This document shows, piece by piece, positions 11,743-15,552 of a stretch of DNA of 64,000 nucleotides; the stretch's first letter is position 1; the number at the start of each line of letters is the position of its first letter. The position numbers and the translations under genes are program-made. Source of the stretch: Lepidodermella squamata (Eukaryota; Animalia; Gastrotricha); assembly GCA_047495785.1 (NCBI GenBank), contig JBLDXI010000012.1, positions 682,001-746,000 on the forward strand, read 5' to 3'. The notes beneath the pieces were generated by a model, which made no database searches, was not told the DNA's origin, and worked only from the letters and a program-made list of their open reading frames with translations.

Positions 11743-12628
11743 CTAGTTCTTCTTTTCGTCCGCAGGTACTTCGAAAATGCCGCACATCAGATTGGCAGGA
11801 ACCGCTCGATCTAAAATGGCACAATTATTCGAATGTTAATAAAGTCAGTCAACTCTTACCGAATTGCTTCGGATACGGCAGGTTGAGGTTATTCATAATT
11901 TCAACGAACTGCTCTTTCGACTTGGTTAACCGGGGATTGAAGCGTTTCTCCTCGCGAACGCTCGTAACAGTACGACCCTTGTAGTCATGGGCCGGGTATA
12001 GCGAAGTATCGTCGGGTAAGCTGAGAATGTGGTCCCAAACGTTTTTGTACAGCATCTCCGGATGTCCTATTCGATCGAGCAATATATCATTTCAATAGTT
12101 TTCTAAATGGGTCCGAACCTTGTTGGAAATCTGTTCGACCACATCCTCTTATTAGCAAAGCATCCCCAGTGAAAGCCATTTTCGCTTCTTTCAGGTAATA
12201 GGTAACACAGCCGTCTGTATGGCCAGGCGTTTCACGAACCTCAAGACTCTAAAAACGATCAATTAGCCGCGAAAACTGAGCAGTTTGAGCAAACAAACAA
12301 ATTTTCCGAACGGAATTTTGTCATCGTGCGAGATTTGCCAATCGGCCTTTGCTTTAGCATTGGCGCTGATCACACTTTTACACGAAGGGTATCGCTGTTT
12401 CAATTTTCCAGTTCCAGTCACGTGGTCCGCGTGAAGGTGAGTATTCAAAGCATAAACCAGTTTCAATTCAAGCGAATCGATTTGCTCAGCATCACGCTCT
12501 TCCATCTCCATAACCGGATCAATGATAATTGCTTCGCGAGTGGTCATATCAGCGAGAAGGTAGGTGTAAGTTGACGACTCGCGCTCGAAAAGTTGACGAA
12601 ACAACAAATTTTCGCATGAAAGAGCCAT
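11743..12628 (-). CDS. ETHE1: Persulfide dioxygenase ETHE1 paralogue b, no N-terminal presequence (exons 12628-12299, 12248-12119, 12066-11860, 11810-11743)
   Basis: [78 protein letters not shown]. Confidence 0.93.
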
Positions 12629-12769
12629 TGAAGCAAGTAGAAAAAAATAAAATAAATTAAAACTTAAATCCTATCAATGAATTTAATAACGAATAAACGT
12701 TGAGCGAAAAAGAGGAAAATTCAACGGTTAATCATTCACCAACTGTCTGTAGATAAGTTACATTGACGT

Positions 12770-13657
12770 TCAATTTTCGGCAACCTCAAAAATTCCACAC
12801 ATCATATTGGCAGGGTGTGCTCGGTCGAGCTGCTTTGGGTAGGGTAAATTCAAATTGTCCATAATTTTGATGAATTCGCCCTTGGTTTTCGTAAGACGAG
12901 GGTTCAGTCGTTTCTCCTCGCAGACCGTAGTCACAGTTCTCCCCTTGTAGTCATGCGCCGGATACAACAGTGTTTCGTCTGGTAAGCTAAAAATGTGTTG
13001 CCAAACCGAGTCAAACAGCGTTGATGGGTTGCCATCCTATAAACTCAGATCTAATACATCTGAATAGCCTAAATAATTTGAAATTCACTTGAAAGTCCGT
13101 TCTACCACAGCCTCGAATTAGCAGGGCATCACCGGTGAATGCCATTTTGTGACTAGGCAGGTGAAATGTAACACATCCATTCGTATGGCCAGGTGTTTCC
13201 CTGACATCCAACTCCTGCAAATTTGCAATGAGTTAAACTAATTTCAAAGCTATTTTCATTCAATTTTTACAAATTTTCCGAATGAAATCTTGTCAGCGTG
13301 ATTGACGAGAATGTCAGCTTTCGCTGTCGAATTTTTGCCAATTACACTCTTGCAGCCATGGCTCGCGTATCTAGCCTTCAGTTTGCCTGTTCCGGTAACG
13401 TGGTCAGCATGACAGTGAGTGTTGATTGCATATCGAAGCTTCAGCCCAAGAGAGTCAATTTGCTCGGCATCTCGCTCTTCCGTCTCAAGAACCGGATCGA
13501 TTAAAATCGCCTCACGTGTCTCAGTGCAAGCCAACAAATAGGTGTAAGTGCTAGATTCACGCTCGAAAAGCTGCCGAAAAATCAATCCACCAGCATTATT
13601 TGCTACCATATTAGACAGCGCGCGACGAGGAACAGCGAGTAAATTCAACAGATTCAT
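12770..13657 (-). CDS. ETHE1: Persulfide dioxygenase ETHE1 paralogue a, with putative mitochondrial presequence (exons 13657-13271, 13214-13089, 13036-12770)
   Basis: Leader [16 protein letters not shown]; [51 protein letters not shown]. Confidence 0.93.
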
Positions 13658-14383
13658 ACAAAAATAAACTATACCTATCGACCAATTTACAAAAATTATT
13701 GGACATTTGAAAGTGAACTAAATTCGGTCAAAAAAACTTCAATGTGGTTTATATAAGTAGTACGAGAAAAAACGCTGCAGTATGGCAACACTCTTTTTAC
13801 TGTTGAAACGCTTTTCATAAGTAATCATGTAGTAGTAATAGTAGTAGTAGTAGCATAGTAGCGTGGTAGAAGAGGGCGCAGACTGTTCACGTTGATAGAG
13901 AAATAAATGTTTGTGCGGCGATTTTGCGGAGAAAATTATACATTTAGTCGCCATATCAAAGGACAAAAAGGCACAATAAATTGAAACAATTAATACTCGA
14001 TCTGTCTACCGTTATGCTACTGTTTCTGACAAATAAATTATCGTCATTTCACATATTTTGCTACATTTATTTAAGGTTGCTGAAAGTGGCAGATGGCTAG
14101 GTCAAGAGTGACAAGATCGTTCCAGCGGGATTTGTCGCGTATTCGTTTTCATACAACTTAACAGACCGGGTTGCAAATCCTTGCGCCTCAAAAATCATCA
14201 AGGTAAATGGGATGAAACAAAAATAGTTCAATTATTGACAGTGTGTAATCATGTAATTGAAACTCAAATTATTTTAGCATTTTCGTCATCGTCAATCATA
14301 AAACGACGTGGCAATTACAGGAAGACCTGTCAAGCGTTTGTTCAGTCTCTGTTAGCAGTCACTTTTGCATGGGTTGTTAGCAA

Positions 14384-15552
14384 TTAGCTTTGCCATTTAT
14401 ATTCAGGATGGTGTTCCAACATCGAAATCATGTCTTTCGGTTCCTTTTCCCGCTTGCAAATCTTGTGCACGGCTGTGAAGAGGGGGAACTCGTCAGTCAT
14501 CTTCCTGCCGTCTAAAATGACGAAAACTTCCTCCGCAGTGCCGGGGCCTGAAAATCGAAGGATTATATCACAAGAGAACAAAAAAACTTGCTACATACCT
14601 TGCAGCAGTTGTCCACCTAACATCTCTTTCTCGAGCTCCTCGAGGGTTTTCCCAGTTTCCGCAAAAGCGGCGGCCACCTTCCGGTTTCGACCACCGTAGC
14701 AAGTAGTCACGAGGTCGGCAACGCCGCAGCTCTGCAGGAAAGTTCGCATGTTGGTACCAGGATAGAAAAGTTCAACAAAACGGATCATTTCCATTAAACC
14801 CAGACGAATGATGGCGGCTTTTGTATTGTTACCGAACTTGAGGCCATCGCTGTTTCGAAATACGAAAATTAAATTAATTTTCATGAATATCGACAGTCAA
14901 CTCACCAAAAACCAGCTCCGCAGGCGACAATGTTTTTCAGGGCACCGCAAAGTTCAACACCGGCTACATCAGGCACGACCGTGATGCGGAAATAGTCGAT
15001 ATCGAACAATTTCTTGAACAGCTGGCCGTGCGAGAAATATTTCGAACCGACTGTCGCCTCGCAGAAGCTCTCCTGGGCAACTTCGTTCGCGATATTTGCA
15101 CCCATAAGAACAGACATCGGGATTCCGAGTGACTCAGTGATCATTTCAGAAATGAGTTCCAGTCGATCAGGTCTGGCGATGACACCCTTGATAAGACTGA
15201 TACCGAGCGCGCTCAGAGGGATTTTGCCCTTCAGAGTCGCGCAGGTCCTAGCAACGAACTGATGAGGGATAACGAAAACGAGGATAGTCGCGTCCTTCAC
15301 TGCATCGACGAGCTCGGGAACAGCATAAACGTTGGTAGGCAGTTTGATATCGGGGAGGTATTTGACATTCTCGTGTTCAGTATTGATAATCTCAGTCAGC
15401 TTTCTACCATTCACCATTTCTTCGAAAACCCACATATTTACGCGTTCATCGAATAAATCTGAATGGCGCCTGGTGTTCGCTCCAACAATTCGGCAGATGG
15501 CAGAACCCCAATTGCCAGAACCAATGATGCAAACTTTGTGACGAGTAGTCAT
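14384..15552 (-). CDS. GPD1: Glycerol-3-phosphate dehydrogenase [NAD+], cytosolic (exons 15552-14906, 14849-14599, 14547-14384)
   Basis: [44 protein letters not shown]^[38 protein letters not shown]1 versus GPD1L cannot be resolved. Confidence 0.95.

Follow-up and report, generated by a model that had tools for sequence, protein, structure and literature searches.

Head-to-tail ETHE1 persulfide dioxygenase genes, one with and one without an N-terminal leader, in the gastrotrich Lepidodermella squamata

Gene structures at the locus

A 64,000-nucleotide stretch of the Lepidodermella squamata genome (contig JBLDXI010000012.1, positions 682,001 to 746,000; hereafter the window) holds, at window positions 11743-13657 on the minus strand, two complete, intron-bearing ETHE1 (persulfide dioxygenase) genes arranged head to tail. 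Copy a has introns of 56 and 52 nt and copy b introns of 50, 52 and 49 nt, each bounded by GT and AG. A first-pass annotation of this DNA had proposed that ETHE1 is duplicated in tandem here, with a presequence on one copy and none on the other; the duplication is real. The coordinates, N-termini and motifs given there are correct, as is the distance of 141 nt between the copies, which is exact from the stop codon of a to the ATG of b; the introns had gone unmentioned. The genes and their parts are as follows.

Copy a gene: exons 13657-13271, 13214-13089, 13036-12770, minus strand; 3 exons, 259 aa
Copy a exon 1: 13271..13657, minus strand; 129 codons, the leader and the HxHxDH portion of the metallo-beta-lactamase domain
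Copy a N-terminal leader: 13586..13657, minus strand; 24 codons ahead of the LIFRQLF strand
Copy a exon 2: 13089..13214, minus strand; preceded by the 56-nt GT..AG intron; Pfam Lactamase_B, E 5e-8
Copy a exon 3 and stop: 12770..13036, minus strand; YPAHDY and PANMMCG; solved persulfide dioxygenases, E 1e-28 to 1.5e-26
Copy b gene: exons 12628-12299, 12248-12119, 12066-11860, 11810-11743, minus strand; 4 exons, 244 aa
Copy b exon 1: 12299..12628, minus strand; 110 codons, MALSCEN then LLFRQLF, HLHADH motif
Copy b exon 2: 12119..12248, minus strand; split Gly codon at its end; 4CHL, E 2.2e-17
Copy b exon 3: 11860..12066, minus strand; YPAHDY, split Asp codon at its end; persulfide dioxygenase structures, E 3.7e-20 to 1.4e-18
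Copy b exon 4 and stop: 11743..11810, minus strand; carries the charged tail PADEKKN
NAD-dependent glycerol-3-phosphate dehydrogenase (GPDH): 14384..15552, minus strand; Pfam NAD_Gly3P_dh_N and _C; 726 nt upstream of copy a, a synteny anchor

Identity as persulfide dioxygenases

ETHE1 converts glutathione persulfide and O2 to sulfite. Database matches were made with single exons, and the joined proteins, spliced by script from the coordinates, were used for alignments, trees and substitution counts. In both copies, exons 1 and 2 match Pfam Lactamase_B above the cut-off (exon 1 E 3.2e-10 for a, 8.9e-10 for b), and each exon tested matches solved structures of ETHE1 or persulfide dioxygenases (4CHL, 2GCU, bacterial PDOs) with E 1e-17 to 1e-32. 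Exon 1 matches human ETHE1 4CHL with E 4.6e-32 (a) and 3.6e-30 (b), and matches human glyoxalase II 1QH3 more weakly (E 2.8e-5 and 1.1e-5); for exon 1 of copy b, the match to Arabidopsis ETHE1 2GCU has E 9.6e-31. When aligned to 4CHL, the metal site reads HCHADH in a and HLHADH in b, and both copies keep the PGHT (His) and FTGDAL (Asp) iron-ligand motifs as well as the C-terminal PAN..CG segment with its active-site-proximal Cys (PANMMCG in a, PANLMCG in b). Both proteins are thus predicted to be iron-dependent persulfide dioxygenases of the ETHE1 type. Searched in all six frames, the 121-Mb assembly has no ETHE1 genes other than copies a and b.

Conservation of the pair in a distant relative

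A word search of the protein collection with copy a exon 1 (the query was a 153-codon open frame that includes 20 non-coding upstream codons, long enough to let full-length ETHE1s through the length filter, with only residues 21-149 scored) returned no transcript-derived protein of this species. The best database relative, 64% identical, is encoded by a 13-kb scaffold (L005) of an ENA metagenome, from a distant relative, and the gene order on this scaffold is that of the window: GPDH, a long ETHE1, a 160-nt gap, a short ETHE1 and DENN/SBF2 genes. The long gene, a2, encodes 246 aa and starts MLRNLFSFVRPLESN-LIFR, and the short gene, b2, encodes 250 aa and starts MAPK-LIFRQ, with only four residues ahead of the catalytic domain; its first residues are mildly basic. 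A metagenome scan with copy b exon 1 found no closer relative and no additional tandem pair.

Protein identity among a, b, a2 and b2 is 66-74%. Every pair combines saturated synonymous sites (pS 0.75-0.85) with a pN of only 0.19-0.25, which shows that all four genes have long been under purifying selection and that the window copies are old. In a tree of 51 ETHE1s (LG+C20), the four form one clade (100/84), within which a groups with a2 (97/83) and b and b2 have no firm placement. Furthermore, a 2-residue insertion before CKSVI is common to a and a2. Other measures are more equivocal: eight signature columns favour a+a2 and b+b2 and six favour grouping by species, support for a+a2 is lower in a smaller LG+G4 analysis (85/76), and an AU test on that smaller set does not reject a clade of a and b within species (p 0.25). 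The case for orthology of a and a2 is therefore built on the larger tree, on the indel that they share and on gene layout. Since gene order, leader and indel are shared, the most economical reading is one duplication that predates the divergence of the two species, with some gene conversion, or a parallel duplication, possible in the history of the four genes.

The position of the last intron of copy b (KQ/D) is also occupied in both ETHE1 genes of the relative, and this intron has been lost in copy a alone. A 52-nt intron in the RTDFQ region is found in both window copies (13037-13088 and 12067-12118), offset by 4 nt and in phase 0 versus phase 1, and is found in neither gene of the relative (L005 4300-4330, 5290-5320); intron 2 of a and that of b have no significant sequence similarity. 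Charged C-terminal tails are present in b (PADEKKN, 11743-11765) and b2 (EEQQHHHGHKEEEKK with a His-rich run, L005 5600-5673) and absent from the long copies. A TAC-rich trinucleotide run lies ~150-190 nt upstream of copy a (window 13845-13880) and a GTA-rich run, in the opposite orientation, upstream of a2 (L005 3540-3575); this may be either a promoter-region feature that the two genes have in common or coincidence.

The leader of copy a and the leaderless start of copy b

Copy b is, by prediction, the same enzyme as copy a, shortened by the first ~10-17 residues. Counted as 25 residues (the 24-residue leader plus the following L), the segment ahead of the catalytic domain of copy a contains two Arg and no acidic residue, for a net charge of +2 by a crude feature count, and its RAL/S sequence fits, by eye, an R-3 cleavage motif. 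In a2 a homologous but shorter leader is present (15 residues, one Glu). Copy b has eight residues in the same place, with one Glu (position 6), no basic residue and a net charge of -1. By eye, the start of b lines up with RPLESN-LIFR of a2 and RALSN of a, and copy b therefore begins at about the point where a processed copy a would start.

It had also been claimed that copy b starts directly at the catalytic domain, and the DNA ahead of it bears this out. The 141-nt spacer is without coding potential, its two ATGs each meet a stop immediately, and the frame upstream of the b ATG contains stops at -45, -48 and -57; the ATG of b2 has an in-frame TGA 9 nt upstream, so that an N-terminal extension of b2 is ruled out. 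For these reasons the leaderless start of b, as judged from the genomic sequence, is genuine and conserved in the relative and not an accident of annotation. Copy b might still be extended by an upstream exon spliced to an acceptor at -42, or by an AUG supplied by a spliced leader, given that the 42 nt ahead of its ATG are open in frame and that GATAG/G at -42 resembles an acceptor. Such an exon would, however, sit beyond the entire gene a, the spacer offers no usable ORF or donor, the added residues would be an F/L-rich stretch read from a T-rich tract that does not resemble a presequence, and the TGA at -9 excludes the same arrangement for b2. An extension of this kind is very improbable.

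Even less credible is the idea that copy b, as a duplicate, is decaying or goes unexpressed. The protein collection yielded no transcript-derived protein of this species, but copy a likewise lacks a transcript match, so that the blank is uninformative; an exact look-up for a transcript-derived protein of a neighbouring 444-aa ORF also gave no match. Against decay, the frame of b is intact through all four exons, whose splice sites are canonical, no catalytic motif has been lost, and pN is 0.23 against a pS of 0.85 in the comparison with its counterpart in the relative.

A candidate spliced-leader operon

Besides lacking coding potential, the spacer carries signals that bear on how copy b might be expressed.

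Spacer between a and b: 12629..12769, minus strand; 141 nt, 72% A+T, no coding potential
ATTAAA, likely poly(A) signal of copy a by sequence: 12682..12687, minus strand; 83 nt past the stop of a, 53 nt before the ATG of b
Candidate spliced-leader acceptors: 12663..12672, minus strand; GATAG/G at -42 and TTTAAG/T at -34, followed by a T-rich run and the ATG of b

The acceptor-like AGs fall 9 and 17 nt past the ATTAAA, and in the relative a strong acceptor, TTTTTTTTAATATAG, stands at -37 from the ATG of the short copy. In sequence terms this is the layout of a spliced-leader operon, with genes on the same strand, a spacer of ~100-200 nt and a poly(A) signal just ahead of an acceptor. Only ~35-45 nt separate the probable poly(A) site of a from the ATG of b, a distance into which a conventional promoter would not fit, and b is therefore probably co-transcribed with a. 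The b message would then be freed by spliced-leader trans-splicing, so that the a-b unit is probably an operon resolved by a spliced leader.

Long and short ETHE1s among animals

Across the 51 ETHE1s, the N-terminus changes between leaderless and long at least 12 times, at least seven of these changes being forced by well-supported branches. Long/short pairs have independent, lineage-specific origins in the flatworm Macrostomum and in teleosts, and probably in echinoderms; the long Macrostomum ETHE1 has no second ETHE1 in tandem. Other groups, namely tunicates, rotifers, amphioxus and Saccoglossus, have only short forms in the sample.

A pair with the same polarity as that of the window is present in the fish Poecilia formosa (KI519669.1, L063:3348-14195), where a leaderless copy of 235 aa directly follows, on the same strand, a 294-aa ETHE1 whose leader is long and basic. 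The short protein starts MAKPEAPIFRQ, and the long one has a similar internal stretch, ...SRMAKTEGLLFRQ. The pair matches the published poeciliid tandem duplicates ethe1a/ethe1b (PMC13721252). In the passages of that paper matched by term search the missing leader goes unmentioned. A literature search found no paper on a leaderless or cytosolic ETHE1 paralogue.

The earlier assertion that ETHE1 is normally single thus does not hold generally, given the long/short pairs of the flatworm, teleosts and, probably, echinoderms, and the poeciliid tandem. The gastrotrich locus is a well-conserved, selected example of a recurrent duplication pattern and is not very unusual.

Where the two enzymes may act

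The N-termini suggest a division of labour between compartments. The short, basic and acid-free leader of copy a would direct its import into the mitochondrial matrix, where the enzyme would act after sulfide:quinone oxidoreductase (SQOR), as in other animals. Copy b, having no classical presequence, would stay in the cytosol or nucleus and oxidise persulfides outside the matrix; its location outside mitochondria is predicted from the absent presequence only. That the paralogues differ in precisely the segment that resembles a targeting signal, and that this difference has been kept across two distant species, is consistent with this division. It is about an even call, on sequence grounds, whether copy a is indeed mitochondrial and copy b outside the matrix.

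The main alternative, which is less likely than not, is that both copies reside in the matrix and differ instead in expression level, timing, tissue or kinetics; b would then enter by way of an N-terminal signal that stays uncleaved, or of an internal one. Some matrix proteins do have uncleaved or internal import signals. Short ETHE1s are the only form seen in the sampled Ciona, Phallusia, Clavelina, Styela, Rotaria, Branchiostoma and Saccoglossus, and a short N-terminus may therefore still permit mitochondrial import. The known ETHE1 substrate originates in mitochondria, and the N-terminus of b2, as noted, is mildly basic. The isoelectric point of the catalytic core, which had been considered as a proxy for compartment and was dropped, does not differ between long and short forms (p 0.74). 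Similarly, the two Poecilia copies respond alike to sulfide, both being induced 13-16-fold in sulfide springs (PMC13721252). Against a shared location, copy b carries an acidic residue (Glu, position 6) and no basic one ahead of the first strand of the fold, the paralogues differ in exactly the targeting-like segment, a difference kept in both species, and the fish have lost the same segment independently.

When the operon and the two compartments are taken together, the locus would be a conserved spliced-leader operon whose one transcript yields two persulfide dioxygenases, one mitochondrial and the other truly cytosolic, a tentative proposal that is, as a whole, rather unlikely. The sulfide detoxification of animals is described as purely mitochondrial. 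If the proposal is true, the repeated and independent leaderless ETHE1s of gastrotrichs, poeciliid fish, a flatworm and echinoderms would point to an unrecognised extramitochondrial persulfide oxidation in animals. If the leaderless copies are cytosolic, they would be the first dedicated animal enzymes that remove glutathione or protein persulfides outside mitochondria, and the gastrotrich and fish pairs would be natural test cases. The a-b locus is also a possible operon in a gastrotrich.

Sulfide pathway genes elsewhere in the genome

Other components of sulfide metabolism were searched for in the assembly. A sulfite-oxidase-type molybdoenzyme domain has three genome matches (C18:167127-178825 and C54:4026219-4026755); the two on C18 are only 11 kb apart, and one has an internal TGA. 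Rhodanese domains have 32 genome matches, among them single-domain genes in tandem clusters and two genes with two domains each (TST/MPST-like), a set that may be a lineage-specific expansion. Rhodanese loci among these are as follows.

Rhodanese locus: C9:5119299-5135018
Rhodanese locus: C19:260748-262974
Rhodanese locus: C45:30171-30938
Rhodanese locus: C18:120678-121433

SQOR was not among the 10 of 62 Pyr_redox_2 candidates that were scored, the matches checked being FMO, an NDH-2-like protein, AIF and thioredoxin reductase. An ORF at C15:4424235-4424480 (L059:1694-2524) has its best match in the yeast Ndi1-type alternative NADH:ubiquinone oxidoreductase (E 4e-16), an enzyme type that is present in only some animal groups. 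The suggestion that the pair suits an animal of sulfidic sediments or one with sulfur-oxidising symbionts finds no support; nothing points in that direction, and Lepidodermella squamata is a freshwater gastrotrich.

Comparison with known systems

The ETHE1s of human, Arabidopsis and Urechis are mitochondrial-matrix forms. The gastrotrich proteins share with human ETHE1 (4CHL) and Arabidopsis ETHE1 (2GCU) the same fold, the HxHxDH and His/His/Asp iron-site motifs, RGCGRTDF, YPAHDY and the C-terminal Cys, and the leader of human ETHE1 is about as long as that of copy a. They differ in that two genes are present instead of one, that b is leaderless and that a and a2 carry the 2-residue insertion before CKSVI. 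The Urechis enzyme SDO is likewise a long, mitochondrial form (PMC3846777), and extramitochondrial roles have been proposed for human ETHE1 (PMC4819959).

Bacterial cytoplasmic persulfide dioxygenases (PDB 4YSB, 9RHQ) resemble copy b in length (~233-235 aa), in their lack of a targeting peptide and in their catalytic core, and exon 3 of both gastrotrich copies has its best match in the bacterial 4YSB. Unlike these enzymes, copy b is of animal ETHE1 descent, is related to a in the tree and contains spliceosomal introns. Copy b was not acquired from bacteria.

The spliced-leader operons of nematodes, tunicates and flatworms are similar to the a-b unit in their same-strand genes and a spacer of ~100-160 nt, and in having acceptor-like AGs and a T-rich tract within ~10-20 nt after the poly(A) signal. 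Unlike the leaders of those operons, that on b is putative.

The closest parallel to the leader-bearing and leaderless pair is that of the poeciliid fish, with same-strand neighbours, the long copy upstream and the leaderless copy downstream. It nevertheless stems from a separate duplication: the teleost copies cluster together in the tree, and the fish duplication is therefore independent and its layout convergent. The fish genes, unlike the compact gastrotrich pair, have long introns and lie ~2 kb apart, without operon-like spacing.
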